Positions 1 through 58,947 of a stretch of DNA of 64,000 bases are shown one piece after another. Origin of the DNA: Octopus sinensis (taxonomy: Eukaryota); NCBI RefSeq assembly GCF_006345805.1, contig NW_021833018.1, forward strand, positions 1-64,000. Direction: 5' to 3'. The notes beneath the pieces were generated by a model that was given only the letters and a program-made list of their open reading frames with translations, did not search any database and was not told the origin of the DNA. The position numbers and the translations under genes were made by a program. Position 1 is the stretch's first letter. The number at the start of each line of letters is the position of its first letter.

Positions 1-426
1 TATGTATTCCTAATATCTCACGTTAAGCTCAAACTCTCCCACAGTCGAATTTGAATGCAACGACGAAGCCTTGGTTTTGGTCGTCGATTATATTTCCGGT
101 TGTTTGAAAGACTCTATTTAAGCCAAATATAACTCAGAATCAGATATTGACAACTTCAAAGCGGCATTAATAGAACTCAACAACAACGTGGAGAATGTTT
201 GTTTGATTTTAATATCCTATAGATCTATCAATTGCTCATGGCAATGGCTTTGTGGGAATGTGATGAAAAGTCTATTAACGAGTTATCGGAGGCTGCTGTT
301 TTGTCGGGGAATGGACACGTGCTTGTTAATGTACTGAAGCAGATCTACCCCGAGGATCAGGCCACTAATCGACCTGATCTTGCTAAAATCATTAGCTTTT
401 CTGACACGATTTTACCACAAGGTTAA
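1..426 (+). CDS. 3' part of an unidentified host gene with tiny introns
   Basis: Removing GT-AG introns 99-122 (24 nt) and 197-222 (26 nt) gives one frame, ..FECNDEALVLVVDYISAKYNSESDIDNFKAALIELNNNVENIYQLLMAMALWECDEK..LPQG*, which joins ORF 232..426. No family recognised. Confidence 0.6.
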
Positions 427-596
427 GTACCGGTCCCTTTGATTACAAAAACAAAATTTAAATTAAAAAAATAATTAATTAAAAATATATTAAATATAAT
501 TTAATAAATAATTAAAATATATTAGATGACAAGACATTTGTAAGAACATACTTATTCCGTTACTATTGTCGCAAGATAGACCACCAGGCACACGAT

Positions 597-1342
597 TTGT
601 CCCCTACAATCACAAGTTTATCTTCCTCAATGTCGAATTTCTACGAAAAGACATCCAAACAACTCGAATCTTTGAAAACCCGAATTGATTCTTTAAAAAA
701 TGCCCCATCAGACAGTTTTAAATCAGTTCTTGTCGACTTGGAGTCAGGAGAGGACTTGAAGACAATCATTTCGAAGACATTCACCGACAACAATCAGTTG
801 AGTCCCCTCGAACGTCAACTGACCACGTTTTTCCTGTGCTGTCGTCGGTTTGTGAGTCAATTGGCCATGTCCCGGGATTTCGAATCAGTCAAAAATTCAA
901 TTTTGTGGTCCCTCGGTGAGTCCCTTCAAGGGATCCCCTCAGGAGACACAATCTCCCTGCCAAGCTCACTCAACAATCTCTTCAACGTGATCGAAGCCAC
1001 CCCCCAACAAGGGATGTTGAATATAATGAGGGAAGAACTGAGGACAATTGGATTGAAGGTCGATCAGTTGTGTTCCGACAAAAAAGTGGACATTTCCAAT
1101 ATTTTTAGTCCTCGACTCCTCAATGTGAGCCCCAGGCAATGGACGAGGGGTTGGTCGACAGCAGTCCTGTTAAGAGGGTTCGCCAGAATGACGAGGAAGT
1201 GAGTCCCCCCAAACGGATTACCGCCAATGTTGTTGCAAAAGCACGCAAAGTTCGTTTTTTACTCAAAAATTGTGCAACGAAGATATTAAACGACAGCGAG
1301 GGTTATCGAAATGGGGGGACTAGTCACGTTCCTTGTCGATAA
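597..1342 (+). CDS. Hypothetical host protein (true start probably upstream)
   Basis: A 23-nt GT-AG intron at 1086-1108 (gtggac..ttttag) puts ORF 597..1202 in frame with ORF 1139..1342 (..CSDKK|SSTPQCEPQAMDEGL..). No family recognised. Confidence 0.6.
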
Positions 1343-1639
1343 ATATGACTGTTTTATTGGTTAAGTGTTAAATATCAACATTTTTCGGGCAGACATTAAA
1401 TTACAAAACTCATCAAGGGACTATTTTCCATAACAGTCAGTGTCGGTTGTGCAAAATCATATTTTTTGAATCCCTTTCGCTAGTCTTTGACTTCTTAATT
1501 ATCCAAAAAGTCACTGGCATTAACACAATTATCTATTAAGCCTATACGATTTTTCAATTTGGTGGATTAAGTCAGGCGTAAACCTTTTTTTCAATTTAGT
1601 CTAGGAGAAATGATTGTTAGCTTGATTGTCCTAGGAAGT

Positions 1640-1990
1640 GAATCTATGCTTTAGCTGGGTGTATGGATGTGGTAGAACTTAACAACGATCGGACCTGTCT
1701 TTACCTTCCCTACAGATGTTCTAGCTTTATATGCCTTTGCAAATTCTATGAACGCAGAAAAGATCGATCAAAATATTCTGCCTTTTGCAACTGGCTATTT
1801 TTCAAGTTCTCCTTTGCGCCAAAAACGGCAATCATTTAAATCGCTGCTAATCATGTCATCTTCTCAAGCCATAGTTCCCGCTATTTCAACTATTACAGTA
1901 ATTGGTATGGCTTCTTTAGTTACGCTTTCGTAACTCAAGCAGTTTATCGACTAACAAAAGGAAATGTTTCTTATCCAGGTAAAATCGATA
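1640..1990 (+). pseudogene. Decayed bacterial FetB/YbbM (UPF0014)-like ABC permease fragment
   Basis: ALYAFANSMNA resembles the family GNSMNA motif, and QAIVPAISTITVIGMASL resembles AALIPTINSMxxVGLVSL. Intronless with stops. Recognition is weak. Confidence 0.35.
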
Positions 1991-2539
1991 CATTAACCTT
2001 TTTATTCTCTTATTTTTCTGATCAGCAGCTGTTAGGTCAAATCAGCAGCTGTTATGAGTTAATTATTCATTTGAGACCAAGCCTATGTCAAGTTCACCGC
2101 AAACTCCACTAGAATACTGTTTATTCTGCCTATAACCAAACAATTTGAAAATCGATCAATCTATAATCAAGAATCTAAATAATACAAATTCACCTCGCGA
2201 AGTTATCACCGATATTTTTGACTCAATGTACACGCGTGGATTTGGCTTAAGATATCTTGAACAAATCAAACAGAAAGTCCTGTTATTCTTCTCCATAATT
2301 AGTATTTTGAATGGATAGAGGTTGTAGAAACGGTCGAAGATTTACAAAATAACAGAAAAATTTGTAACAGCAAGCAACCGTCTAAGCAAAATCCACATTT
2401 CTTTACACCTTTTATTAAAAAATTCAATAAAAAGATCACTGGAAACTTTTACTATTCTCGTTTCAGCAGGAAATATTTACCCTATAAAAGGTAGACATGC
2501 AATTATGACTGATAACACGTGATAACCAGTTTTCAAAAA

Positions 2540-2905
2540 TGTGTGATGTCAATCACGCATTCTTTAATTCTACTGAAATTGACGTGATATCTTATTAACA
2601 ACTTAGTTAACTGGAAGTGTTTTGGTTTCTTTGAAGCATCTAGGATTCTTTCTTGTCCCAATGACCATTTATTTTGGAATCTTTTTTCCCCCATAAATGC
2701 GTTTAAATGATACGTTGTTTCTCTCTTTCCAATGCTGAAGCCAACCTGAATTAGGAATAAAATCATCCAGTTTCATTAACCAATTTATCCAATTAATCGA
2801 TATATATTGAATGGAAAGCATATAAAATATGTTATTGAAAATAAATTTATGTCATTAGCCGATTTATACAATTAACCAATATGCAATTGACCAGTGTATA
2901 CTGTA
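2540..2905 (-). mobile_element. pogo/Tigger transposase fragment within the bacterial-like block
   Basis: Minus strand reads NSGWLQHWKERNNVSFKRIYG (CENP-B-type HTH motif) and MVIGTRKNPRCFKETKTLPV. A TA|CAGTATAC terminus lies near 2905. Confidence 0.55.
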
Positions 2906-3113
2906 CCAAGTTCTTAGTTCTCTTTAAGAATGAACGCTAAAGAAAAAAACTTAATAAAATTTGAAGTCAAGATTTGTTATTAAAACATCTATTCTGAGCT
3001 TGATTTTCTTTCAGTTGAAATGAGAACTTTTCAGGGTTTTTGAATCCACATGCAGTGATCTCTTTTCCCCATTCTTACAATACATCTTCTATTGATTCTA
3101 AAAGGAAAACAAA

Positions 3114-3246
3114 ATGAAAAATACGTTCAGTAGATCCAGTAAATCAAGCAATTGGCATTGCTTCCCTTCATTTTCAAGAAGCTGACCATTTAATTGCTCA
3201 TGGCCGTCGAAAGCTAAACAACGCCGAACAAAAAATCCAAACACTG
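3114..3246 (+). pseudogene. xseB: Exodeoxyribonuclease VII small subunit remnant (bacterial)
   Basis: SLHFQEADHLIAHGRRKLNNAEQKIQTL matches the XseB C-terminal helix. The ATG at 3114 is preceded by an RBS-like AAAGGA (3101-3106). The 5' part is frameshifted. Confidence 0.6.
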
Positions 3247-4590
3247 AATAGCATTCCCAAAAAACTTAAAAAATTCACCTTTATTCTCAATGATAATGTC
3301 ATAGCAATTACCAAAAATGTAATCGCTGTAACAAGTATTCTCAGCCACTTTTTTAATAGCCTTATTGCTAACCACATTCACGACGACCTGATAAAAGTCA
3401 TTCTAAGAATTCCAGGTTACGTAAAAACACTTATCGAGCAAAGCAATCAGATGAAAGAATCAATGAAAAACGTGATTAGCACTGCTAAATTTAAGCAGTT
3501 TGGTCTCCATCGATGTGCATGAAATCAAAAAGCTTATCGATACTATCAAAGCACTGAAAGATCAGGACCCCTTTACCCTCGTTCACATTCTTCCAGTAAA
3601 AGGACAAGGCATAAAAAGAGAAGGCATGCATCCAACGCCTTATCAAAAAGGAAAACTATTTAATAGAAAAACAGGAGAATTACATCTTTATAAAAATCCT
3701 AGGCTAACATTCTTTAAAGTTTTTTGGAAAGCACGTTCTCAAGTTTGCTGAAGAAGATCCCAATATTGTTGCTATCACACCTGCTATGCACGTCGGCTCT
3801 TGCTCAGATGTTTTTATGAAGCGATATCTAGACAGCTGCATAGATGCAGTCATTACCGAGGGAAACTCTTTTGCCTACTCTCTAGGTATGAGCTATAATG
3901 AAAAACTAAAAGTCATTGCCTTTGTCTAATCAACTTTCCTCCAGCGTGCTTTTGATAACATTTATCACAATGTTTGTGTTCAAAAGCATCATTAATCGCC
4001 CTGGTCTAGCTTTTGATGATGGAATCACTGCTCAAGGGCTCTAAGATATTGAATGCCATGCCCAATATATTTATCGCGCAGCCTTGAGGCGGGAAGGAAT
4101 ATGCTAAAAGCCCTCCTACAAAGTGCTTTCGTATGGAAACTTCCATCTGCTATCCGCTATCCTAACTTACAGACAGTTGACGAAGAGATTCAATTCGAAA
4201 AAGTTTTTTTAGCAAAGAATCCCTTAAAAAGGAAAAAATCTAACGATAGTAGCTTTTGGCCACGTGGTGGATATTGGTCTGCAAACACGCGAGCTTTTGC
4301 TTTTAGAAGACCTTGATGGAACAGTCATCGACCAATCTTTGTTAAACCTTTGGATGAAGATACTTTGAAAATTCTCGAGGTGTTGTTATAATTGAAAAAC
4401 ATTCACTTCAAAGTGGCATGGGATCGATTATCAATTCTTTTATTGTCCAAGAAGGCTTGACTCATTTACACGTTAGGAAATCAGCATGCTAATCATGCAG
4501 ACTTGTTAAAAGAAGTTGGACTTTACCCCGACAATATTGCTACAGGTTTTAGAGACTTCTTCAAAACAAACTGCCAGGGTCCAATGAAAA
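3247..4590 (+). pseudogene. dxs: 1-deoxy-D-xylulose-5-phosphate synthase pseudogene, chlamydia-like, N-terminal part deleted
   Basis: Colinear motifs: FTFILNDN, IDVHEIKKLID..HILPVKGQG, EEDPNIVAITPAM, ITEGN (IAEGH equivalent), STFLQRAFDNIYHNVC, NAMPN, SAIRYPN, FVKPLDED, IEKHSLQSGMGSIINSF. Many stops and frameshifts, no introns. Confidence 0.92.
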
Positions 4591-5410
4591 AAATTGCTCT
4601 TTTTCCAAAAACTAAAGAGAAATCAAAAAATATCTTTTCTAAAAAAAGCATCCAGGTTGCTGTTGGAGATGATAAAGCAAGCGATCTTAAGAGGCACCTC
4701 TTTTCTCGGCAAACTCGTAGGATATTGAATGGTTGATCACAATGAGAGGAGATGGATCTATCTTGCGCGTAGCGCATAAGTACGCTGATATCGATGCAGT
4801 TATTTTATGAATTAATTTCGGGCATCTCGGGTTTATGGCAGATGTTCAAATCATCAATATCATCCTCTGACTGGAAGATTTAATTCACCGGCAGTTCACA
4901 TTTAAAAATAGAATAATGATCGAAGGAACATCTCAAAGTAAAAAGTCTTTCTTTTCCATAAAGAATTGTCTCCTACAACTAGTACACAATCCTATTATTA
5001 TTAAAATGGCAATTTATGTTATCTTTATCTGAATAGGCTTGAAGCTGATAGTGTCATTTTAGCAACCTTTAATATGTCAACAGCTTACTCTTTAAGTTGC
5101 CGGTAGTCCTATCTTAAGCCCTGATATTAATGCTTTTGTCTTAACTTCTATTTGTTTACATACCATTTCAAATCGTCCTTTCGTTCTTACACTAAACCGC
5201 AAAATTCAAAACGAGTATGTGAGTGAAAATGAGTCCATTGAAGTTTCTGCAATGGTCTCAACCGCTTTGAGCTAAAAACGGGAGAAACGATTAAAATCAG
5301 ACGCAGTCAAAAAAATTCAAACTCGTTAATTTAAACCACATTGACTTCTACTTTACTCTCCGAACAGAGCTCTGCTGATCCGGAAAGCTTCGTCAATCAA
5401 AGGAAATTGA
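4584..5410 (+). pseudogene. nadK: NAD kinase pseudogene (bacterial, directly after dxs)
   Basis: MKKIALFP.., ITMRGDGSILR (decayed GGDG), INFGHLGFMADV, EADSVILATFNMSTAYSL, HTISNRPFVL, FYFTLRTELCxSGKLR. Stops and frameshifts, no introns. Confidence 0.9.
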
Positions 5411-5426
5411 TTAAACAGTTTCTCTC

Positions 5427-5700
5427 ATGATTCCTTTAAAACTTGCGTTTAATTTGTCCGCTTTTAACCCCTGACTGCAGAAAAATTTGATTCATATCTT
5501 CGCTATCAACAAGATGAAAAAGCAATCCAAGCTCAATACTCTTTAGAAATGACCGGAATCATCTCTGCAAATCAAACGCATGGTGGTTTGATGCAAGCCC
5601 TTGGAAAACGCTTATACTACGTAACAACAGGTCCTCGTATTATCGATGGCCTTCATATTGCAGGGCGAACAATGGGATCTAAATTAAAACTAAAACAAAG
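5427..5700 (+). pseudogene. Probable next gene of the bacterial operon (unidentified)
   Basis: ATG 16 nt after the nadK stop, same strand, intronless: ..DSYLRYQQDEKAIQAQYSLEMTGIISANQTHGGLMQALGKRLYYVTTGPRIIDGLHIAGRTMGSK. Family not recognised. Confidence 0.4.
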
Positions 5701-6347
5701 CCAGGGCTTTTTTATAATCATCATATTACATGTTTTGTTGTAGGAACCAATATAAGAAGTTGTCATTATCCTTAATAGAAAGGTTTATAAAACTCTTAAT
5801 CCAAAAGACAACTCTTTAGACTTGTGATTTATCATAGTGAGCCATTAGATAAAGCATCTCTCAAAGTAAGTGGTGAAACCCCTCCTTTTTTCTATTATTA
5901 CATGCGTATTATGCAAGCAGATCAAATAAACTTTATAAACGTTAAACCTTGTGATAAAAACTATTAATAAAATCAAGTAACCTTTCAAATGGAGAGTTGC
6001 CACACCATCGACCGAGTCAGAGAATAATTCGGTGAACTGCTTTAATCCAGAAGAAATTGGAATAAGATCCAAGGCCGCCCCACCGCACAGCTAAAGTCTT
6101 GTTGTATACTGATAATGATTATACTAAATACCGTTTTCAATATCTTTTGATAGATGAAACTAAGATAGTTACTATCAATAGAGTTAAAAAATGTTAAGTT
6201 TTTCAAATTTTTAGGAATTATCTTTAGTCAGTAATTAATGTCAAACTAAGTAGGTCACCCTGTCAACCCTGTCAACAATGAAGGTCGCTCTGGTCGTCAG
6301 CGTGGGGCGCGACATAATACATCTCTCACATTGCAAAATATCATCTA

Positions 6348-7012
6348 TACCATTTCCCATACTAAGTGGGATAAACACCAAACTAAGTGGGATTGAGAGA
6401 AAACTAAATGGGATTAACATCAAACTAAGTGGGATTAATAACGAACTAAATGGGATCAATAAAGGATTACTTTTATTATAAATATTATATTTTGACGCAG
6501 CAAATAAAAATGCCACGTAAATCATTAGAAGAGAAAAATCAAATACATAGAAATAAAATACATTTAATTTCAGTTGCAGAATCAGGTGGGGATTGGAAAA
6601 AAACGGCAATTGAACTCAATATCTCGAGAACAACAGCATATCGTTGGATAAGGGATGGAGTTAAACCTGACACGAGAGGTGGAAATTATAGAAAAAAGTT
6701 TGACAAAGAACATATCGACTTTTGTATATCATGCATTGAAGACGATAGCACAATTACCCTTCATGGAATTAAACGAAAATTTGAATTAATTTTTCCGAAA
6801 TTATCAATATCAAAATCAAGTATCGCTCGACATCTCAAGTATCGTTAACATAAAATTTTAAACAAAGAATTTTTTGGTGTTAATCCCATTTAGTTTGCTA
6901 TTAATCCCACTTAGATTGATGTTAATCCCACTTAGTTTGACGTTAATCCCATTTAGTTTTCTGCTAATCCCACTTAGTTTGGTGTTAATCCCATTTAGTA
7001 TGAGAAATGGTA
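6348..7012 (+). mobile_element. Internally deleted Tc1/IS630-like element with 21-bp repeat-array TIRs
   Basis: TIRs TACCATTTC(C/T)CATACTAA(G/A)TGGGAT with flanking TA on both sides. Five left and six right inverted 21-bp units (core ACTAA(G/A)TGGGAT). The internal ORF from 6501 encodes only the HTH region (KTAIELNISRTTAYRW..RGG..ISKSSIARHL). Confidence 0.85.
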
Positions 7013-7877
7013 TATTGTTTACTAATCTAAAATTGTTTGCCAAAAAAGGCTTGAATAATCAGCAATGACTTCACAATGACTACATAAGATTTCATTTTGA
7101 AATGCGTCCAAATATATCAAGGCAAAAAATAGGTGACGAAAAAGTCAAAAAAATAGAATGAGAATAATTTATAATTTAAAATTAACAATTAATTAGTTTG
7201 TTGTAGATTTATTAAAATAATTATTTATTTATTAAATCGAACTTGTTGATGTGGTTTATTTTTGCATTCATCTTTTACAAAATAATTTCAGTGACTGATC
7301 TCCAATGTGAAATCAATGAAGACATCCTCTCAGAATGGAACAACTATGTTGCCAACTTCAGTATTGTATATACTTTCAATGTATTAGAGATCAACAACGA
7401 GAGCCATTCAGAATCTGCATTTTTAAGCGTAACATGGACATTATCAATGAAAACAACAAATTATATGAATCTGGAAAGTCGAGCTATAAAATGGCATTAA
7501 CCAATTCACTCATTTAGTTCTTTAACTGATTATTATGTAGACTGCCGACGAAGTTCCCAAAGGATTATCACCAAATATTTAACCCTCACTAATTCTAATT
7601 TTTCACTAATTCTATTTTCTCTATTCTAATTTTTCTCTATTAGTGGCGTCATATGACGTCATGATTTTTGTCAAGTTTCACAAAAAAATAAAGGTATAAG
7701 ACGCGAACTACGTAATTATATTATAAACATGGGGAATTTTTGTATATTATAAAAAAAAGGAACAATTAGAACTGATGAAATAAAACGGATTTTTCCAAAT
7801 TAGAAAAATTACAGAAATATGTTGACAAGCGTTTCAATGACGAGCATTTCAATGATTGTCTTTATTAAATAAAAAAA

Positions 7878-8575
7878 TTTAACGCGGACGATATCTTGGT
7901 TACGGATGTCTTGATGTGGGGACCCCGACACAGAGAAGGTTTTCCTGGAGCAGACTAGAACCGTACTTGGAGGAACTTGAAATCTGGTGCAATGGTAAAG
8001 GCTTGAATCTCGCTCGGGACAAAAGTACCATTTGTTGGATTTCAATGGGTCGTGACAAAAAACCGACTTTCGAGGATTATGGGAACCTGATTATATCGAA
8101 GAACCTACGTTACCTGGGAGTAACTATAGACCCCACCGGGTCATACAAACCCCATGTGCATGCAAAGCGGAAACAAGGAGCGAAAATCCTAAAAGGACTG
8201 AGGCGTTTTTGTCTAAGCGCAGAAACGTTTCTACACATCTACCAGACTTGTGTTCAGCCACTAATAATCTATGGTTCGGAGGGCTGGTACCAAACTGATG
8301 AAAGGGACCTTCTAATCGCCAAACTCGAAAAAACCAGACAATTTGCCATCAAACTGCCATTCGGCCTGGAGCTCAGCAGTCCGCTGGAGGACCTGCATGA
8401 GCGGAGTGTTGACACGATAGACGCGATCCTTGCAAAAACTCGAATTCGCTGAGGAAGATAAGACAGTCTCCCGGGGCAAAACCGAAGTTGAGACCTTCGT
8501 GGCTCTCGTTATCAAGCCCCCTAAGCTCTAATTCCTCGGCCACTTTTCTTTTGGAGCTATTGTATTAAATAAACC
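7878..8575 (+). mobile_element. 5'-truncated APE-type LINE, RT C-terminal fragment
   Basis: NADDIL (YADD-like), LRYLGVTID, IYQTCVQPLIIYGSEGW, followed by an A-rich 3' end. Confidence 0.85.
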
Positions 8576-9099
8576 ATATTCTTCACTATTAAATAAAAAA
8601 ATTTAAATTGAAAAAAATTAATAGATCCATATTGCGCATTTTGGGTTCAAAAATGTGCAAACTATTATTTGTGAATTTAAAATTTTGGATTAAATTGTAA
8701 TTTTGGTCTTAATGGGAGTAGTGCAATTCCACAGTTTTAAGTGTGTAGAGACATAAACCAAAGTTCCAGGTTTGTCTCCTAAAAACTATCTCAGCAGGTT
8801 AGTTATAAGGAATTTCCTTACAGACTATTGGTAAACAAACAGAAACCATTTAATACACATAAGATTTGTATAATGCCAGACAAATAAGATTAATTTTATC
8901 TTTCTAATTGTGATTTCTTTTCTGTAATTGATTGTCGCTATTTGATCTCGCTCTAGATAAAATATATATGTTTTGTATTTAATAGAATTTGAGACTACCC
9001 TATCCTGTGTCAACACGATAAAGAATCATTTATATATTCATGTATATATAAAAGTATTGGGAAGCAGGACTTCAATTCATCTTTTGTTATCATTTTATT

Positions 9100-14633: not shown

Positions 14634-17600
14634 TCTTAATAATAAAATGGTATGGTGTGTGTCTGTCTGTCTGTCTGGTGTGTGTCTGTCTGTCTGTCTG
14701 TCTGTGCACACCACATTCAAATTGTTACAAACCAGATCAAATTGTCAAAACCTTCCCTTTTGTAGTTATTCGATAATGAGGCACAATAAAGGTTGATATC
14801 CTCTAAGAACCTTCCTGTCAAAAAATTTTAATAAGAAAGAATATCCTCGATGATGAGGTCCCCCAAAACCTTCAAGTCAATTTTCTGCGTTTTTGTTAAA
14901 ATGAACAACAAGAAAGTCCTCGACTCACATGATGTGGTCCCCCAAAACCTTCAAGCCAAAAAATTAAAAAAAATTATTTTCTGCGTTTTTGTTAAAATGA
15001 ACAACAAGAAAGTCCTCGACTCACATGATGTGGTCCCCCAAAACCTTAAGCCAAAAAATTAAAAAAATTATTTTCTGCGTTTTTGTTAAAATGAACAACA
15101 AGAAAGTCCTCGACTCACATGATGTGGTCCCCCAAAACCTTCAAGCTAAAAAATTAAAAAAATTATTTTCTGCGTTTTTGTAAAATGAACAACAAGAAAG
15201 TCCTCGACTCACATGATGTGGTCCCCAAAACCTTCAAGCTAAAAAATTAAAAAAATTATTTCTGCGTTTTTGTTAAAATGAACAACAAGAAAGTCCTCGA
15301 CTCACATGATGTGGTCCCCCAAAACCTTCAAGCCCAAAAATTAAAAAAAATTATTTTCTGCGTTTTTGTTAAAATGAACAACAAAAAAGTCCTCGACTCA
15401 CATGATGTGGTCCCCCAAAACCTTCAAGCCAAAAAATAAAAAAATTATTTTCTGCGTTTTTGTTAAAATGAACAACAAGAAAGTCCTCGACTCACATGAT
15501 GTGGTCCCCCAAAACCTTCAAGCCAAAAATTAAAAAAAATTATTTTCTGCGTTTTTGTTAAAATGAACAACAAGAAAGTCCTCGACTCACATGATGTGGT
15601 CCCCCAAAACCTTCAAGCCAAAAAATTTAAAAAAATTATTTTCTGCGTTTTGTTAAAATGAACAACAAGAAAGTCCTCGACTCACATGATGTGGTCCCCA
15701 AAACCTTCAAGCTAAAAAATTAAAAAAATTATTTCTGCGTTTTGTTAAAATGAACAACAAGAAAGTCCTCGACTCACATGATGTGGTCCCCCAAAACCTT
15801 CAAGCCAAAAAATTAAAAAAAATTATTTTCTGCGTTTTTGTTAAAATGAACAACAAGAAAGTCCTCGACTCACATGATGTGGTCCCCCAAAACCTTCAAG
15901 CCAAAAAATTAAAAAAAATTATTTTCTGCGTTTTTGTTAAAATGAACAACAAGAAAGTCCTCGACTCACATGATGTGGTCCCCCAAAACCTTCAAGCCAA
16001 AAAATTAAAAAAAATTATTTTCTGCGTTTTTGTTAAAATGAACAACAAGAAAGTCCTCGACTCACATGATGGTCCCCCAAAACCTTCAAGCCAAAAAATT
16101 AAAAAAAATTTTTCTGCGTTTTGTTAAAATGAACAACAAGAAAGTCCTCGACTCACATGATGTGGTCCCCCAAAACCTTCAAGCCAAAAAATTAAAAAAA
16201 ATTATTTTCTGCGTTTTTGTTAAAATGAACAACAAGAAAGTCCTTGACTCACATGATGTGGTCCCCCAAAACCTTCAAGCTAAAAAATTAAAAAAATTAT
16301 TTTCTGCGTTTTTGTTAAAATGAACAACAAGAAAGTCCTCGACTCACATGATGTGGTCCCCCAAAACCTTCAAGCCAAAAAATAAAAAAATTATTTTCTG
16401 CGTTTTTGTTAAAATGAACAACAAGAAAGTCCTCGACACATGATGTGGTCACCCAAAACCTTCAAGCTAAAAAATTAAAAAAATTATTTTCTGCGTTTTT
16501 GTTAAAGATGACAACAAGAAAGTCCTCGACTCACATGATGTGGTCCCCCAAAACTTCAAGGTAAAAAATTAAAAAAATTATTTTCTGCGTTTTTGTTAAA
16601 ATGAACAACAAGAAAGTCCTCGACTCACATGATGTGGTCCCCAAAACCTTCAAGGTAAAAAATTAAAAAAATTATTTTCTGCGTTTTGTTAAAATGAACA
16701 ACAAGAAAGTCCTCGACTCACATGATGTGGTCCCCCAAAACTTTCAAGCCAAAAATTAAAAAAATTATTTTCTGCGTTTTTGTTAAAATAAACAACAAGA
16801 AAGTCCTCGACTCACATGATGTGGTCCCCCAAAACCTTCAAGCCAAAAAATTAAAAAAAATTATTTTCTGCGTTTTTGTTAAAATGAACAACAAAAAAGT
16901 CCTCGACTCACATGATGTGGTCCCCCAAAACCTTCAAGCCAAAAAATTAAAAAAAATTATTTTCTGCGTTTTTGTTAAAATGAACAACAAGAAAGTCCTC
17001 GACTCACATGATGTGGTCCCTCAAAACCTTCAAGCCAAAAAATTTAAAAAAATTATTTTCTGCGTTTTTGTTAAATGAACAACAAGAAAGTCCTCGACTC
17101 ACATGATGTGGTCCCCCAAAACTTCAAGCCCAAAAATTAAAAAAAATATTTTCTGCGTTTTTGTTAAAATGAACGACAAGAAAGTCCTCGACTCACATGA
17201 TGAGGTCCTCCACAACCTTCAAGCCTCGTGAGGCCATTAATTAGCTTAGCATCTTTTTTTTCGATGACATAAATTCTTTTTTGTTAAATTTTCGTTAAAA
17301 AAATAAAATAAAAGCTCTAATTGTTATCGACCATGAATAGACTGTGCAATTATCAGATTTTGAAAACCACTAAAAAGGAAAAAGCAAAAATTATTAGAGA
17401 TTTACATAATTGATTCTTTTTAACTGCCGAAACTGACAAATTCGATTATGCTACTGTTTAGATTTCTTAAAAGATAGAGGCAAATAAAATTTAAATTAGT
17501 CATGTAAATTTCAATTTGCCTATATTTAAATCTCCTTGATTTAACAGGCTTTAATTTTTTCCTTATAATACTACAAAGATGAAGCTGATTATCATTTTCT

Positions 17601-18868
17601 TACCGAAACAGACAAGTTCGATTATGCTAAAGTTTCAATTCCTTTAAACATAGAGGCAATTAAGTATAATGGCTTTGATTGGATAATACACTTTACATAA
17701 ATTTCACTAAATAATTTACGTAGAAAATTTAATATAAATTACTGATTCGCGTTTACAAAATCATAAGAATGTCCTATAAAGAGAGATCTGAGAATGTTAA
17801 CAAACAAGAGAATATGAACCATATAACAAAAAAAGAGAAACGAGGGAAGATGTGCTTAATGGTGAGGGAACTTAGACAACAGCTGAACAAGGTCAGGACT
17901 GCTGTTAGACTCAACTACGGGTAATAGAATTATGCATTCTAGGTTAATTGTTTGGGATGAATGTACGATGGCTCATAAAGGCGCATTCAAGCAGTTGACC
18001 GAACATATAGAGATATCAAGAATTGTAGCGACCATTTGTTTGGGGGAGCATTAGTTGTATTGGCAGGTGATTTTAGACAGACGCTGCCATTATTCAAAGA
18101 GGGACGCCGCGGATGAATTGAATGCCTGCCTCAAATCGTCATATTTGTGGACACACGTGAAAAAGGTAAGCTTAGATGTAAATGTACATGCACATTTACA
18201 AGGCGTTAATAGCATATTCCCACAAATCCTTCTAGATATTGGAAATGGGGCAATCACTTCAGAAATGCACGACCAGAAAATTAGGCTACCGGAAGAATTA
18301 TGTATTTTCGTAGAAACAGCAGAAGAATTATTGAATGCCGTCTATTCCGAACTATCTGAACACTACGTGAATTTCGACTGGCTGCGTGAACGAGCTATAT
18401 TAGCTCCACTTATGATGAGGTACTTAATATAAATTTAGATTTATTAATGAAAATCCCTGGCAGAGAAGAATATATAAATCGGTCGACGTTATTATGGACC
18501 ATGAAAGGGCCTGCGATAGATTTAAGAGACTACAATTTCCGCTGAAGATAAGTTTTGCTATGACAATAAACAAGGCCAGGGACAGTCTTTAAAGGTAGTA
18601 GGCTTATTTTTAGAGAACGAGTGCTTTTCACATGGCCAGCTGTATGTGGGGTGCTCAAGGGTAGGTAGAAGAGAAATTTATTTATATTGCCAAGGATGGA
18701 CGGACTGCAAACATCGTTTATCCACAGGCCTTAGAATAAGGTTATATCAAAGCAGGTCGCATTTATATATCTACATAAATTTATAGTTATTTAAGGAAAC
18801 TGCGAGCGTAGCGAGCAGGGCCTCCGCAGGAGCTAGCTCGCAGTGAGCGAAGCGAACTGCTGAGCTAG
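14634..18868 (+). mobile_element. Non-autonomous Helitron, copy A1
   Basis: A|TC 5' end, (CTGT)n microsatellite, 96-bp satellite, decayed PIF1 helicase motifs ([36 protein letters not shown]), a 3' GC-rich hairpin region and a CTAG terminus. Confidence 0.93.
14850..17225 (+). repeat. Tandem array of about 25 x 96-bp units inside Helitron A1
   Basis: Unit AAAATGAACAACAAGAAAGTCCTCGACTCACATGATGTGGTCCCCCAAAACCTTCAAGCCAAAAAATTAAAAAAAATTATTTTCTGCGTTTTTGTT. Variation is mostly homopolymer length. Confidence 0.98.
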
Positions 18869-21727
18869 TCTTAATAATAAAATGGTATGGTGTGTGTCTG
18901 TCTGTCTGTCTGTCTGTCTGTGCACACCCACATTCAAATTGTTACAAACCAGATCAATAAAAAAATTATTTTCTGCGTTGTTTTAAAATGAACAACAAGA
19001 AAGTCCTCGACTCACATGATGTGGTCCCCCAAAACCTTCAAGGTAAAAAATTAAAAAAATTATTTTCTGCGTTTTTGTTAAAATGAACAACAAGAAGTCT
19101 CGACTCACATGATGTGGTCTCCCAAAACTTTCAAGCCAAAAAATTAAAAAAATTATTTTCTGCGTTTTTGTTAAAATAAACAACAAGAAAGTCCTCGACT
19201 CACATGATGTGGTCCCCCAAAACCTTCAAGCCAAAAAATTAAAAAAATTATTTTCTGCGTTTTTGTTAAAATGAACAACAAGAAAGTCCTCGACTCACAT
19301 GATGTGGTCCCCCAAAACCTTCAAGCCAAAAAATTAAAAAAATTATTTTCTGCGTTTTTGTTAAAATGAACAACAAGAAAGTCCTCGACTCACATGATGT
19401 GGTCCCCCAAAACCTTCAAGCCAAAAAATAAAAAAATTATTTTCTGCGTTTTTGTTAAAATGAACAACAAGAAAGTCCTCGACTCACATGATGTGGTCCC
19501 TCAAAACCTTCAAGCCAAAAAATTAAAAAAAATATTTTCTGCGTTTTTGTTAAAATGAACAACAAGAAGTCCTCGACTCACATGATGTGTCCCTCAAAAC
19601 CTTCAAGCCAAAAAATTAAAAAAAATTATTTTCTGGTTTTGTTAAATGAACAACAAGAAAGTCCTCGACTCACATGATGTGGTCCCCCAAAACCTTCAAG
19701 CCCAAAAATTAAAAAAAATATTTTCTGCGTTTTTGTTAAAATGAACGACAAGAAAGTCCTCGACTCACATGATGTGGTTTCTCAAAACCTTCAAGCCAAA
19801 AAATTAAAAAAATTATTTTCTGCGTTTTTGTTAAATGAACAACAAGAAAGTCCTCGACTCACATGATGTGGTCCCTCAAAACCTTCAAGCCAAAAAATTT
19901 AAAAAAAATTATTTCTGCGTTTTGTTAAATGAACAACAAGAAAGTCCTCGACTCACATGATGTGGTCCCCCAAAACCTTCAAGCCCAAAAATTAAAAAAA
20001 AATATTTTCTGCGTTTTTGTTAAAATGAACGACAAGAAGTCCTCGACTCACATGATGAGGTCCTCCACAACCTTCAAGCCTCGTGAGGCCATTAATTAGC
20101 TTAGCTATCTTTTTTCGATGACATAAATTCTTTTTTGTTAAATTTTCGTTAAAAAAATAAAATAAAAGCTCTAATTGTTATCGACCATGAATAGACTGTG
20201 CAATTATCAGATTTTGAAAACCACTAAAAAGGAAAAAGCAAAAATTATTAGAGATTTACATAATTGATTCTTTTTAACTGCCGAAACTGACCAATTCGAT
20301 TATGCTACTGTTTAGATTTCTTAAAAGATAGAGGCAAATAAAATTTAAATTAGTCATGTAAATTTCAATTTGCCTATATTTAAATCTCCTTGATTTAACA
20401 GGCTTTAATTTTTTCCTTATAATACTACAAAGATGAAGCTGATTATCATTTTCTTTACCGAAACAGACAAGTTCGATTATGCTAAAGTTTCAATTCCTTT
20501 AAACATAGAGGCAATTAAGTATAATGGCTTTGATTGGATAATAACATTTACATAAATTTCACTAAATAAATTTACGTAGAAAATTTAATATAAATTACTG
20601 ATTCGCGTTTACAAAATCATAAGCATGTCCTATAAAGAGAGATCTGAGAATGTTAACAAACAAGAGAATATGAACCATATAACAAAAAAAGAGAAACGAG
20701 GGAAGATGTGCTTAAATGGTGAGGGAACTTAGACAACAGCTGAACAAGGTCAGGACTGCTGTTAGACTCAACTACGGGTAATAGAATTATGCATTCTAGG
20801 TTAATTGTTTGGGTGAATGTACGATGGCTCATAAAGGCGCATTCAAGCAGTTGACCGAACAATAGAGATATCAAGAATTGTAGCGACCATTTGTTGGGGG
20901 AGCATTAGTTGTATTGGCAGGTGATTTTAGACAGACGCTGCCAATTATTCAAAGAGGGCGCCTGCGGATGAATTGAATGCCTGCCTCAAATCGTCATATT
21001 TGTGGACACACGTGAAAAAGGTAAGCTTAGATGTAAATGTACATGCACATTTACAAGGCGTTAATAGCATATTCCCACAAATCCTCTAGATATTGGAAAT
21101 GGGGCAATCACTTCTGAAATGCACGACCAAAAAATTAGGCTACCGGAAGAATTATGTATTTTCGTAGAAACCAGCAGAAGAATTATTGAATGCCGTCTAT
21201 TCCAAACTATCTGAACACTACGTGAATTTCGACTGGCTGCGTGAACGAGCTATATTAGCTTCACTTAATGATGAGGTACTTAATATAAATTTAGATTTAT
21301 TAATGAAAATCCCTGGCAGAGAAAGAATATATAAATCGGTCGACGTTATTATGGACCATGAAAGGGCCTGCGATAGATTTAAGAGACTACAATTTCCGCT
21401 GAAGATAAGTTTTGCTATGACAATAAACAAGGCCCAGGGACAGTCTTTAAAGGTAGTAGGCTTATTTTTAGAGAACGAGTGCTTTTCACATGGCCAGCTG
21501 TATGTGGGGTGCTCAAGGGTAGGTAGAAGAGAAATTTATTTATATTTGCCAAGGATGGACGGACTGCAAACATCGTTTATCCACAGGCCTTAGAATAAGG
21601 TTATATCAAAGCAGGTCGCATTTATATATCTACATAAATTTATAGTTATTTAAGGAAACTGCGAGCGTAGCGAGCAGGGCCTCCGCAGGAGCTAGCTCGC
21701 AGTGAGCGAAGCAAACTGCTGAGCTAG
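18869..21727 (+). mobile_element. Non-autonomous Helitron, copy A2, head-to-tail with A1
   Basis: Junction GAGCTAG|TCTTAATAATAAAATGG at 18868/18869. It ends CTAG|T at 21727 and is near-identical to A1, with fewer satellite units and a 5' internal deletion. Confidence 0.93.
18955..20085 (+). repeat. Tandem array of about 12 x 96-bp units inside Helitron A2
   Basis: Same unit as 14850-17225. Confidence 0.97.
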
Positions 21728-36000: not shown

Positions 36001-36439
36001 TTAAATTAATTTACTAATCTAACTTATTTTATGATTTTATGACGGAATTTTTGCTATTTTTAATGAATTTTGTGTCCACAAGAAATAATTACAGGCCTCG
36101 ATTGGTGTCACATAGAAACTTTAAGGCTTAGTTTGCTATGCCAGGCTTTCCTCATTATAGCACATGTATGGCCTTAAAGAACAATCACAAATTTTTCTCA
36201 CTAGTCAAACAACTATATGGATGACAAATAAATTTAACTAAACAAATTACTCCACCAATCAACAATAGTCATGCACCACTACCCAAAACATCAAGCTATC
36301 AGTCTGTCAATTCTTATCGTGATCAGTTTTTTTGCGTTGAGTCAAATTGATCCGATAGCTCCAGTTTTGGTGGTGGTCTTATGTCAATTCTTTTAAATTT
36401 GAGCTTTGCAACTATATTCCTTAAAACCCCAAAGATGGT

Positions 36440-55000: not shown

Positions 55001-58000
55001 GTTGCTCCCAAAGGACCTCGGGGGAGTGGACAGCAAATTTCCTGCGGACAGGGAGGAGAACAGGGCAGCGGAAAAGGTGATCAGTTGAGTGATCTTCGGC
55101 ACAGCAGAGGTTGCATACCGGGGAGATCACGACGTTCAATGAGTGAGCGTAGGAGTTTAGTGAGTGGTGGTGGCCCGAGCGGAAACGAGCAAGGTTGATC
55201 TGAGCGGAACGCTCCAGAAGCATTTCGGAGGGGTGAACTTCCGGAGGAAGTTTGTTGAGGACAGAGTTAGGCTTCAGCCTTAGAATGGACGACGTTGAAA
55301 TGAAGTCGTGGATTTTTTTCATTGGCTGTGAACATTGGTTTAGGCCATTGATTTTGGCAAGTACCCGGGAGTATAGTTTGGCAGGCGTGTTCTTCAATGC
55401 ACGGCCGTTGTCATTTAGCGTGTTTAGGGCAGTGCAAGGGTGGTAGAGTTTTCGCGAAGCGAATAGGAATTGTGCTCCTCTCATGTTTAGATGTTCCTCT
55501 ATCGGGAGAAGGTTGGTTTCACAGTGCAGATGGTCGATGGGTGTTGATTTCAGGCACCCGGATATGATGCGCATGGCTTTGTTTTGAATTGATTGGAGAG
55601 CCACAGAGGAGCTCATAGAAAGACAGGGAGCCTAACTCGGACTCGCGTAGCTTAGGACAGGGCGAATGTATTGTTTATACACACGTTTGAGAAGTGGTTT
55701 CTGCGCACCAGTGATGCGACCACTTATTGCTTTCAGGATATTTGTGCGCCTGTTAGCCTTGTCAGAGATCTTCGAGACATGTTTATTGAAGGACATTGTT
55801 GGGTCGAAGGTTAGTCCGAAAACAGTGGGGTGTTTTGATAGTGGGAGAACAGAGCCAAAGAGAGATAGGTTGGGATGTATGTTTGATTGTCTTCTGTCGG
55901 AAGATAATAGGGTGACCGAGGACTTGGAGGACGAGGCCTCGAGCCTGTTTTCTCTGAGCCAATTCTCAACGGAGTGAAGTTGTTGCTGAAGGTTGAAGGA
56001 GGCAGCTTTGTAGTCTTCGTGTTTTGAGGCAATAATAATGTCGTCAGCGTAAGATAGTGTCAAGTTGTTAGGATCGTTTGCCGGGAAGTCGTGCAAGTAA
56101 AGATTGAACAGGGATGGAGACAGCACGGAACCCTGCGGTACCCCATTTGGAAGATAGCGTTGTTTGGAACAATGGTCCATGAGGGAGACGTAGCCAATGC
56201 GGCCCGATAAGAAGTTAGCAAGCCAGGATTTGTAGTTTGAGTCTAGGCCGGTCGTGAGAATTTTCTTGGTGAGACCGCAACGGGGGACGCTGTCAAAAGC
56301 TTTAGATATGTCGATGGAAGCTAGAACTGTTCGTTTTGGGGGCCTCTTCACATTGAAACCGTCCAGGACGAACTGGGAAAGCGTTGTTAAGTGAGTGGTT
56401 GTTGAGTGCAGTGGTTTGAAGCCATGTTGGGTGTGGGATGTTGGTAAGTGTTTCGAGACTCGTGAAAGGATTAGTCTTTCGAGGATTTTAGATAGCGTGC
56501 ACAAAAGAGAGATTGTGCGGTAGGAGCTTGGAATGCCAGCCGGTTTGTTCGGTTTGATTAACGGGATGATACGTGATTTTTTCCAAAGAGATGGAATTTC
56601 GTTTTTTACAACGGAATTGTTGAAAATAGACACTATAGCGTTGATGGCGTTGGGGCCAAGTCTTTTAAGGTGGTGGATAGAAATGTTGTCAGGCCCCGTG
56701 GCGGGGGAATTCTTCGAGTTTTTTATACACTGCGAAACTTCGTCTGCAGTGAAAGGCGGTAAGGATTCCGTGCGAGGTAAGCTCCTCCGAGATTTGGCGA
56801 CCTTTCGGTCGTTTTTGTTTGAGGTTTTGTGGCTTAAGGAGGCGTAGTAGTTCATGAGCGAGTTTGCCTCCTGAACCGGATTCAGTGGGATGTTTGAGTT
56901 AGAAGTGGCAGATTCATGGGACTTGGGCTTTTCATAAATCAAATCATTCATGTCCTTTAGGGTCTTCCAGATTTTGGAGCTGTTAGATCTGTAGTCGATT
57001 GAGTTGATAAATTCGGACCACTTAGAATCTGCGTGTAGGTTAATGGCAGCGGTGATTTGTTTGTTTAGGTTAGCCAATTCAATAGAGGACTCGGCAGAGT
57101 GCCTTGATATCTGTTTCAGTTTGTTGCGAGTCTTTATGAGGGATTTCACTTCGTGGCTGTAGTTAGGGCGGAACTTTTCAATTTTTCCTTGGGGGATGAA
57201 ATTTTTGGAGGTGGAAATGATGAGAGCATTAAGGTGATTGACTGCTGCATCAGTCGAGCAAAAGCTGTTAATGTTGAAATTATTCAGAGAGTTTTCTAGG
57301 GCAAGGCGGTATTCGTCCCAGGAAGCTCTTTTGTAGTTAGTGTAACAGCGGCGTTGTAGGTCAATGTTAGATTTTAGCGCATTCTCGATTATGATTGGGT
57401 TATGGTCACTGGTTAGGTCATAAACCACCTTCCAGGAGGTAGCAGAGGCCAGAATAGGAGTACACAGTGAGATGTCGGGAGAGGAGATTGCGTCGCCATT
57501 TCTTGACGGGGTTCTGGTATGGGATGAGGAGTTGTTGAGGATGACTAAACCATCAAGTTGATCAAGTAGAAGAGTTCCTCTTGAGTTGAGGAATTGATTT
57601 TTAAGCCAAATCGGGCTCTTTGCGTTCATATCACCACAGATAAAGACATTACTGAGGGACTGGAGGTTTTGTATTGAAGGTGTCCAACCGTGAGGACAGG
57701 ATGAACACGGAGGGATGTACATGTTCATCAGCCTTCTGGTTGAGCGCCCTGTAGAGACCGTTATAGCCGTCAGCTCAATTACAGGGTCGTTATCGATTAG
57801 TGTGTAAGCTTGTGATGTACAGTTAGAGAAAGGGATTGATTTTCTGATAAGGGTTAAAAGGCCCCCGCCATTTACGGAGTTCGGTATGTCTCGCCGGATG
57901 TATGAGTAACCCGGGAAATCGGGCAGGCGGTTTTTGGGCGAGAGCTTCGTTTCCTGCACCAAAGCAATGTCCACGTCGTACTTCTCCATGAAGGAACAGA

Positions 58001-58067
58001 GTTCAGTGGTCTTGTGGGCGATCCCATTAATGTTTACTTGCAGGATACGAAGTAGGTTCTTCCTGGC

Positions 58068-58150
58068 GGGTCCAGGGTTTTGTTCGATGTCTCCGGAGAG
58101 GAGAAGGGCGAGTTGGGAGTGTAAAAGAGAGGTCCTTGGGAGCAACGGCT
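58068..58150 (-). other. 2A-like StopGo peptide upstream of APE
   Basis: LLPRTSLLHSQLALLLSGDIEQNPG|P matches D(V/I)ExNPGP. Confidence 0.88.
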
Positions 58151-58210
58151 TCGCGCCTGCTCTGCTGCCACCGACGTCACGGAAGGTATCCGATCCGACA
58201 GGGGGGAGGT

Positions 58211-58285
58211 TGTGGGTCTTTTGGTAGTTAATTCCATGAGAAACTATCATTTGCCACCACGAGAAGGTGACCCACATCGACAAAC
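58211..58285 (-). ncRNA. HDV-like self-cleaving ribozyme at the LINE 5' end
   Basis: GUUUGUC GA UGUGGGUC ACC UUCUCGU GGU GGCAAAU GA UAGUU..AACUA CCAAAA GACCCACA. P1 has a G1-U wobble. P2 is 8 bp and P3 is ACC/GGU. P1.1 is UC/GA, and P4 and a J4/2 C are present. G1 is the first base after the TSD. Confidence 0.85.
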
Positions 58286-58947
58286 AAACCATTGCTTATT
58301 AGCAGTAACGTAAGAATTACATAATTTGCAGAATAATTTTCCATCCAGTGAAGATGAAAACTCCTTAGGATATTTATTAACAATAGAAGAAATTCGCTTA
58401 GTGTTGGAACTCCTGTTTTTAGGCATTGTAAAAAAAAAAGCAGTCAACAAAAACCGAAGAAATGACGGTAAGAGTAGAAAATTGACTTTGTTGCTTTTAT
58501 AACTATTTATATATACATTTTTTATCGAAATAATTTGACTAATATCATTTTAACACTATAATTAAACAAAAAACTCAAGTTGACTTTGTTGACTTTCGGT
58601 CGCCCTAGTTCTTTCCTAAAATTATGTACATTTCTAAAAATGCAACAGGAATAATTCAACCAATGGACTTGGAAATTATCAAAACATTTAAAGTGCACTT
58701 TAATAGGCACAAATTATTTTATCTTACTAAAATTTTTGAAACAAAGTTTTGGTTTATGAATCCTATAAAAACATTTAAAACTTAAGGACACTGTTTTTTA
58801 TAAAAATGGCTTGGGAAGACGTATGCTCGAAAACTATTGAAAATTTCTTCAAAAACTGAAAAAATAGATTTTGATGAACAATCTACAGAAAAAATTTTAA
58901 TTGATAATTTAAACAGATATTTATGATCCTAATTTTTTCAATTACAT

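Follow-up and report, generated by a model that had tools for sequence, protein, structure and literature searches.

Remnants of a bacterial xseB–dxs–nadK cluster of probable Simkaniaceae origin in the Octopus sinensis genome assembly

Results

Four collinear bacterial gene remnants in an octopus contig

We analyzed a window of 64,000 nucleotides (VCDQ01005567.1:1-64000) from an animal, Octopus sinensis, whose assembly we take to be PacBio-based. Positions 3163-5922 of the forward strand are occupied by the remains of four bacterial genes in collinear order (xseB, dxs, nadK and a DUF3604-like gene), the limits and lesions of which were mapped by tblastn and frameshift-aware alignment against the nearest bacterial proteins. 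The insert and its surroundings comprise the following features.

1-7840, unstranded: segment with the insert, belonging to a repeat unit that spans 20 kb or more; four further O. sinensis places (L086-L089) match it at 97.8-99% identity (blastn)
238-1202, + strand: LOC118761442, flanking orphan host gene within the repeat unit (exons 238-420 and 525-1202, GT-AG intron)
3163-3246, + strand: xseB remnant (exonuclease VII small subunit), residues 35/39-63 of 94, C-terminus deleted
3235-3260, + strand: xseB/dxs deletion junction, codon 63 of xseB joined to codon 155 of dxs
3235 to about 4580, + strand: dxs pseudogene (DXP synthase), residues 155 to about 628 of 630, about 11 frameshifts, stops at 3927 and 4042
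4584-5393, + strand: nadK pseudogene (NAD kinase), residues 1-280 of 280, five frameshifts, stops at 4718, 4808, 4868 and 5376
5471-5922, + strand: DUF3604-like pseudogene, three frameshifts, one stop
6346-7014, unstranded: small DNA transposon of the right flank, 116-nt terminal inverted repeats of 21-bp units (repeat search)

The conceptual translations match the Pfam families Exonuc_VII_S (below its cut-off), DXP_synthase_N, Transket_pyr, Transketolase_C and NAD_kinase. A first-pass annotation of this DNA had described stop-riddled bacterial genes in operon order on one strand, which Pfam, tblastn and frameshift-aware alignment bear out. Altogether, in-frame stops number about 7 and frameshifts about 19 in the insert of about 2.8 kb; the latter lie mostly outside homopolymers, and a single substitution separates each stop from the codon of the relative.

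In tblastn, the xseB remnant shares 72% identity with its counterparts in the Simkania-like loci L001 and L004, with about 80% DNA identity across 81 nt. Its N-terminus is not recognizable, and the assignment is based on residues 35-63, which score 19.1 bits against PF02609 (Exonuc_VII_S; cut-off 24), and on syntenic position. Alignments to the L004 xseB and the L001 dxs meet at a TGA(A/T)TA microhomology, and the junction removes xseB residues 64-94 together with DXS residues 1-154, or about 540 bp of donor sequence. The deletion fusing xseB to the middle of DXS, which the first-pass annotation had proposed, is real; its junction is common to all five octopus copies. Upstream of 3163, we detected no homology to the relatives, and alignment scores for a native xseB start or an xseA 3' end in this region fell within the range of shuffled controls. 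The RBS-like site and ATG at 3101-3117 are thus not supported as the native start of xseB.

The frameshift-aware alignment of DXS contains 298 identical residues out of 474 (63%), and all three Pfam domains exceed their cut-offs, DXP_synthase_N matching only from profile position 162. No complete open reading frame (ORF) persists owing to the N-terminal deletion, the frameshifts and the two stops, and the sequence is accordingly read as that of a pseudogene rather than of a working DXP synthase. NadK is 68% identical to its relative (190 of 280 residues) and scores 28.1 bits against PF01513 (cut-off 25.5). Its frame is likewise broken, and RGDG stands in place of the GGDG motif. Both dxs and nadK are irreparably damaged as enzymes.

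The end of the insert, previously placed at 5700, lies further downstream, since homology runs to about 5922 through the DUF3604-like remnant, which had gone unnoticed in the first-pass annotation. A hairpin followed by a T run at 5697-5715 was rejected as the insert end because the DUF3604 homology goes on beyond it in another frame. This remnant shares 62 of 134 residues with its relative (tblastn and frameshift-aware alignment). Its best match is KIC76263.1 of Neochlamydia sp. TUME1 (E=6e-7), found by exhaustive phmmer against 1.84 billion representatives; relatives surfaced only in that search, and a word-indexed protein search with the pseudo-protein returned no matches. Pfam yields no PF12228 match for the window fragment, whereas the three closest homologues (P0137, P0138 and P0140; 38-46% identity) match DUF3604.

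Host sequences surrounding the insert

The flanking gene LOC118761442 matches O. sinensis XP_036355210.1 at 100% and has two paralogues, LOC118761330 and LOC118761222. It is annotated at 238-1202 with a single GT-AG intron and not at 597-1342, where a host gene had first been suggested. No Pfam-recognizable content was found in the left flank (1-3162) upon a six-frame scan of 1-3200, and a pogo/CENP-B helix-turn-helix (HTH) remnant suspected at about 2600-2780 of the minus strand received no Pfam support, either alone or in that scan. In the right flank, the small transposon encloses an HTH-only ORF (6450-6848) with weak HTH_23 and HTH_28 matches under the Pfam cut-offs. Pfam further identifies LINE, integrase, Tc1, pogo and MULE elements in the 64-kb window.

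LOC118761442 is the sole annotated gene beside the insert and we found no homologue of it outside the O. sinensis assembly, which could suggest that the contigs derive from another eukaryote in the sample, such as an octopus parasite, and that this organism was the recipient. We consider such an origin very improbable: the insert-bearing contigs span 48-485 kb, are all part of the NCBI-annotated O. sinensis assembly, are AT-rich and are dense in animal-type transposons. Moreover, the repeat unit includes a processed pseudogene of lactate dehydrogenase (LDH) whose best solved-structure matches are animal LDH-A/B.

Sequence relationships and gene order point to Simkaniaceae

The top BLASTP matches of DXS all belong to Chlamydiota, the best being Simkania/Simkaniaceae sequences at 61-62% identity; with lesion positions masked, identity to Simkania DXS is 66.5-68.4%. 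The second-best match, P0002, is 99.8% identical to the DXS of S. negevensis Z, and its 90% cluster holds WP_013943232.1. We built neighbor-joining trees with bootstrap rather than maximum-likelihood trees, and the octopus copy forms a decayed long branch in them. In the DXS tree, the window sequence falls inside Chlamydiae (100%) with P0001 and P0002 (96%), as sister to P0001 alone (86%), and a 48-taxon clade with named Simkaniaceae, Simkania and Neptunochlamydia sequences receives 98%. In the NadK tree, the window pairs with L004 (98.5%), L001 joins them at 100% and Chlamydiae are recovered at 100%.

A survey of 74 chlamydial and 16 other DXS sequences refines the motif evidence put forward earlier. 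Within this sample, IAEGH/IAESH (G or S in place of Q or E) and IRYPN (N in place of R) are chlamydia-specific, whereas ITPAM, which had been listed with them, is not. Gene order provides a further comparison: a divergent tpi followed by xseA, xseB, dxs and nadK occurs in 11 of 11 chlamydial loci, none of them from Chlamydiaceae, and the direct succession of xseB, dxs and nadK, present in all 11, is seen in 0 of 73 other loci. In outgroup loci, xseB and dxs are separated by about 1 kb, and nadK is not directly adjacent. The octopus remnants match the chlamydial arrangement exactly.

These results uphold the earlier proposal of a chlamydial donor, BLASTP and both trees nesting the window in Chlamydiae beside Simkania. 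They support a Simkania-like chlamydia (Simkaniaceae), that is, an environmental lineage and not a member of Chlamydiaceae, as the likely source.

The insert has decayed at all codon positions

Window-specific changes amount to 14.1, 12.1 and 17.1% at codon positions 1, 2 and 3, compared with 3.7, 1.8 and 16.9% in the closest bacterial sister lineage and 8.1, 2.1 and 20.3% in another. At positions 1 and 2, GC-to-AT changes outnumber AT-to-GC changes by 126 to 35. The near-even distribution over codon positions and the GC-to-AT bias indicate that decay was neutral and reached about 0.1 substitution per site. Decay after integration, as initially postulated, is in line with this nearly flat divergence. 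The GC content of the insert is 36.9%, versus 43-44% in the operon of the relatives (about 43.5% in the Simkaniaceae loci) and 34.9% in the whole window.

Five copies share the same junctions and lesions

The assembly has the insert five times, always with the same deletion, borders and lesions, a multiplicity that had escaped the first-pass annotation. These copies are distributed over four contigs, one of which bears two of them at a distance of 23,967 bp within the repeat unit. The copies differ from one another by 0.1-1.2%, and some of them may be haplotigs rather than paralogues. Upstream, the unit contains the animal-type LDH pseudogene and a reverse transcriptase fragment. The LDH-like fragment had been considered as a second bacterial gene and was dismissed, as it scores 170 bits against vertebrate LDH and at most 128 bits against bacterial LDH. 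Within the assembly, the insert is therefore linked to host DNA on both sides, being flanked by transposable elements (TEs), the LDH retro-pseudogene and a spliced gene. Exact-sequence look-ups of the pseudogene ORFs 4053-4316 and 3500-3751 in other assemblies returned no matches.

Chimeric assembly had been a concern from the outset. Octopus contigs could have been misjoined to DNA from a chlamydia living in the sequenced tissue, either a symbiont or a contaminant: chlamydia-like organisms occur in marine invertebrates, only 3.1 kb of the window's contig precede the insert, and the repeat-rich region broke the assembly such that copies lie near contig ends. Other contigs, however, reach 10 kb further upstream, and five copies with identical junctions and lesions and with eukaryotic sequence on either side, two of them 24 kb apart on one contig, argue strongly against a chimera. 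The core genes of a living bacterium are also not expected to accumulate about 26 disabling lesions within 2.8 kb, or substitutions spread evenly across codon positions. Finally, none of the donor-neighbor genes xseA, tpi, secG, def, cydAB, mutS and those for outer membrane proteins (OMPs) is found in the window or its copies. We therefore give almost no credence to an assembly artefact.

Positions 3751-5000 of the insert (1.25 kb) are identical in all five copies. We do not ascribe this to selection since the non-bacterial flank at 751-2500 is equally invariant, and the zero variation reflects gene conversion or polishing and not constraint on the bacterial genes. This invariance, the amplification of the unit and a 104-codon ORF over the DUF3604 remnant, which runs from the ATG at 5427 without interruption in four of the five copies (L086-L089), could nevertheless be taken as signs that part of the insert, or a transcript from the amplified unit, has been co-opted. 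Against this, the ORF follows the homologous frame only up to about 5681 and its end is out of frame, and in the window copy, and only there, it is broken by a CC insertion at 5468-5469. Together with the invariant flank and the irreparable state of dxs and nadK, these features make co-option most unlikely. Enzymatically, the cluster is dead today, and it is of value as a record of past events.

Discussion

A probable fossil of chlamydial DNA in the octopus nucleus

Our data are best explained, with high probability, by a fossil lateral DNA transfer from a Simkania-like chlamydia to an octopus, the transferred fragment being dead and having later been copied with its surroundings. We propose that about 3 kb or more of a Simkania-like chromosome, comprising xseB, dxs, nadK and the DUF3604 gene, entered the octopus germ line; both the germ-line route and the absolute age of the insert are what we infer. 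The fragment would have become part of nuclear DNA rich in TEs, with end-joining as the most likely mechanism, since we found neither a target-site duplication nor transposon ends at the insert borders. It would never have been under selection in the host, so that substitutions, indels, stops and one microhomology-mediated 540-bp deletion could build up. Much later, a region of at least 20 kb with the orphan gene, the LDH pseudogene and TE fragments would have been duplicated, partly as a 24-kb tandem repeat.

Fossils of bacterial DNA are well known from animal genomes, where Wolbachia and a small number of other germ-line symbionts are their sources, and we regard the octopus locus as a genuine new instance of this phenomenon, namely a non-functional bacterium-to-animal transfer. 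To our knowledge, there is hardly any documentation of animal inserts from chlamydial donors, and we found no report of a chlamydia-to-cephalopod transfer in the searchable literature. Like nuclear Wolbachia inserts, the octopus fragment is intronless, retains the donor gene order, sits in a repeat-rich nuclear setting and has decayed neutrally, as is the case for such mostly non-functional inserts; its donor is likewise a bacterium that lives obligately within cells and could potentially reach germ cells. It differs from them in its donor phylum (Chlamydiota) and its host, a cephalopod mollusc instead of an arthropod or nematode, as well as in being a small fragment amplified later by segmental or tandem duplication in the host.

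The octopus copy shares gene order, strand and tight spacing with the S. negevensis/Simkaniaceae loci L001-L004, at 63-68% identity for DXS and NadK, and its dxs keeps the chlamydial signatures IAEG(H) and IRYPN. In contrast to these loci, it has no xseA, lacks the first third of xseB and DXS residues 1-154, and is broken in every frame. In addition, nadK is followed by the DUF3604-like gene in the octopus, whereas hypothetical or OMP genes occupy this place in L001 and L004. Transfer from chlamydiae to a eukaryotic nucleus is also represented in Archaeplastida, whose genes of chlamydial ancestry are ancient, functional, intron-bearing and expressed; the octopus cluster, unlike them, is a dead multi-gene fragment with no sign of domestication.

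Implications

A fossil transfer of this kind would imply that a close relative of S. negevensis was once able to reach the germ line of the octopus, and thus a past association between chlamydiae and octopuses. The locus could serve as a sequence snapshot of an ancient Simkania-like bacterium and as a marker datable through orthologous insertions in other octopods. We know of no animal with the MEP pathway, and the insert is expected to have no functional effect on the isoprenoid or NAD metabolism of its host. A more speculative extension, which we hold to be rather unlikely, is that the cluster is the tip of a larger and older germ-line invasion, with more Simkania fragments spread across octopods and this insert common to several Octopus species. 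If so, the association between Simkaniaceae and cephalopods would be tens of millions of years old and would provide a dated calibration for Simkania evolution.

The insert can also mislead contamination filters and metagenomic binning, since chlamydial reads obtained from octopus may be of nuclear origin. Contig breaks in the O. sinensis assembly are explained by the repeat unit: one copy opens the contig of the window, and VCDQ01001464.1 has another close to its end.

Remnants of a bacterial operon

In a three-frame reading of window positions 2800-6500, DXS and NAD-kinase peptides are recognisable, interrupted by stops and frame changes. Pfam searches of stitched translations identified both Transket_pyr and Transketolase_C, matched DXP_synthase_N only from profile position 162 on, and scored NAD_kinase at 28.1 bits and Exonuc_VII_S at 19.1 bits, under its cut-off of 24. 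A word-indexed protein search returned no homologue of the stretch 3' of nadK; exhaustive phmmer against 1.84 billion representatives found four relatives, the best being a DUF3604-domain protein of Neochlamydia sp. TUME1. Remnants were placed by tblastn, using proteins encoded at the closest bacterial loci as queries, and by a purpose-written frameshift-aware alignment:

3163-3246 (+): xseB remnant, residues 35-63 of 94, truncated at both ends; 72% identity (tblastn, residues 39-63)
3235-4575 (+): DXS remnant, residues 155-627; 298/474 identical; ~11 frameshifts; stops at 3927 and 4042
4584-5393 (+): NadK remnant, residues 1-280; 190/280 identical; 5 frameshifts; stops at 4718, 4808, 4868 and 5376
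5471-5922 (+): DUF3604-like remnant (frameshift-aware alignment); 62/134 identical; 3 frameshifts, 1 stop

These placements and the Pfam matches bear out the first-pass annotation, which had described bacterial genes riddled with stops and a deletion joining xseB to mid-DXS. It had counted three genes at 3114-5700; the gene remnants are confirmed, but they number four and, because the DUF3604-like remnant reaches 5922, the insert extends from ~3163 to ~5922. The xseB-dxs fusion removed ~540 bp of donor sequence, with its junction at a TGA(A/T)TA microhomology. Each stop is a single substitution away from the relatives' codon, and homopolymer runs contain only ~4 of the frameshifts, which makes long-read error an insufficient explanation. 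The insert is non-functional.

Upstream of 3163 we detected no homology to the relatives' xseB start or xseA end, alignment scores lying within the range of shuffled controls. The proposed RBS-like site is thus unsupported, and 3101-3117, with its ATG, is not a native start. A repeat search found no target-site duplication or repeat flanking both insert ends. A CC insertion at 5468-5469, present in the window copy only, disrupts a 104-codon ORF (ATG at 5427) that spans the start of the DUF3604 remnant and is uninterrupted in all four further copies of the insert.

A Simkania-like donor

Every named top BLASTP match of the octopus DXS belongs to Chlamydiota, with 61-62% identity for the best matches and 50-53% for named Simkaniaceae and Neptunochlamydia. 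With lesion positions masked, identity is 66.5-68.4% to Simkania sequences and 46% to Protochlamydia. In a neighbor-joining tree (91 sequences, 436 columns, 100 bootstraps), the octopus copy groups with the two closest bacterial proteins, P0001 and P0002 (96%), inside a clade that includes the named Simkaniaceae, Simkania and Neptunochlamydia sequences (98%), within Chlamydiae (100%), on a branch several-fold longer than its sisters'. The Simkania negevensis Z DXS falls in the 90% cluster of P0002, to which it is 99.8% identical over the compared region. The NadK tree is concordant, uniting the octopus copy with the Simkania-like locus L004 (98.5%), then with a second such locus, L001 (100%), within Chlamydiae (100%).

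The nearest genomes read tpi<-|xseA>xseB>dxs>nadK, with overlaps of 17 nt and 4 nt. The gene-order comparison suggested in the first-pass annotation revealed direct xseA-xseB-dxs-nadK adjacency in 11/11 chlamydial loci examined; among 73 non-chlamydial loci, none has nadK directly adjacent, and those with a nearby xseB show a ~1 kb gap between it and dxs. Of the DXS motifs proposed as chlamydial, IAEG/SH and IRYPN held in a comparison among DXS sequences and ITPAM did not. The chlamydial donor originally proposed is upheld by both trees and refined: it is Simkania-like.

A 321-aa DUF3604 relative is encoded on a bacterial contig (L091; ENA ERZ25039544 contig_36229) that may represent a chlamydia-like genome with pseudogenes; the contig also bears a transposase, a resolvase and fragmented Maf and HEAT-repeat genes of the kind that lie upstream of xseA at the Simkania locus.

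Neutral decay

Substitutions were polarised with the two bacterial sisters, L004 and L001.

Lineage changes at codon positions 1/2/3
Octopus copy: 14.1% / 12.1% / 17.1%
L004: 3.7% / 1.8% / 16.9%
L001: 8.1% / 2.1% / 20.3%

At positions 1 and 2, the octopus copy shows 126 GC>AT versus 35 AT>GC changes, and GC content is ~43.5% in the relatives' operon, 36.9% in the insert and 34.9% in the whole window. The near-even changes across codon positions and the GC>AT excess agree with the original proposal of integration long enough ago for decay. After subtraction of the bacterial-type contribution, roughly 0.10-0.11 neutral substitutions per site have accumulated since escape from selection. Dating requires a cephalopod rate; under an assumed yearly rate of 1-5 x 10^-9 per site, the inferred age would be ~20-110 million years.

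One integration, amplified with host sequence

The recipient is the octopus. The ORF at 597-1202 is 100% identical to Octopus sinensis XP_036355210.1, and the window is identical over the compared stretch to the first 11.2 kb of VCDQ01005567.1 (256 kb; GCA_006345805.1). Annotated paralogues of this flanking orphan gene led to further insert copies: four more places (VCDQ01012903.1, the end of VCDQ01001464.1, and two on VCDQ01006825.1, 23,967 bp apart) match window 1-6479, in some cases 1-7840, at 97.8-99% identity, entire insert included. As homology between copies holds across the full 10 kb upstream, the repeat unit spans at least 20 kb.

All copies share the xseB-dxs deletion and lesions, and their inserts diverge by 0.1-1.2%, from which we conclude that a single integration underwent long decay before recent duplication of the host region. 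The pair on VCDQ01006825.1 is certainly paralogous; haplotigs may be among the others. The first-pass annotation had raised the possibility of a chimeric assembly; this concern is removed because the insert, with the same junction deletion and lesions in five copies, belongs to an amplified repeat unit, although copy number needs care. Differences between the five copies are unevenly spread, with none in 751-2500 and 3751-5000 and more elsewhere, a pattern consistent with gene conversion or with polishing of repeats by short reads and giving no sign of constraint. Across window 1-6500 compared with the other copies (L086-L089), they cluster in 2501-3500 and 5751-6500.

The first-pass observation and its main interpretation thus stand, with refinements to donor, host, gene count, right end, RBS and copies. 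Events of this kind are already familiar for other intracellular bacteria, and the octopus insert is a further instance; within the searchable literature, we came across no description of chlamydial DNA in the genome of a cephalopod.

Other features of the repeat unit and window

The orphan gene, LOC118761442 (window 238-1202, +), is predicted with two exons and has at least three near-identical O. sinensis paralogues; no homologue outside this species was found among 5.8 billion proteins. The upstream portion of the repeat unit carries an RT fragment and a processed pseudogene of animal-type L-lactate dehydrogenase (L087 ~2520-3700, ~6-7 kb upstream of the equivalent of window base 1), which lacks introns, is frameshifted and, among solved structures, best matches animal LDH-A/B. 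TE insertions also distinguish copies: a 746-bp RT-like fragment specific to the window (7841-8586) and a 2-kb insertion within the small TIR element specific to L086 (16214-18293).

Window mobile elements include an apparently intact LINE, a MULE, a retroviral-type integrase and remnants of Tc1 and pogo transposases; a tRNA search of the window found none. Further features are:

14634-17225 and 18862-20000: satellite arrays, period ~95-96 bp, also at L086 20370-20964, after the repeat unit
15750-16127: spurious repetitive ORF arising from this satellite
36074-36362 (-): short eukaryotic SSU rRNA match (Rfam RF01960, model 1178-1604; 51.3 bits, barely over the gathering score), probably an rRNA-derived pseudogene or repeat
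55632-58292 (-): seemingly intact 886-aa LINE ORF with AP-endonuclease and reverse transcriptase domains, within a strongly GC-skewed, GC-rich block; possibly recently active
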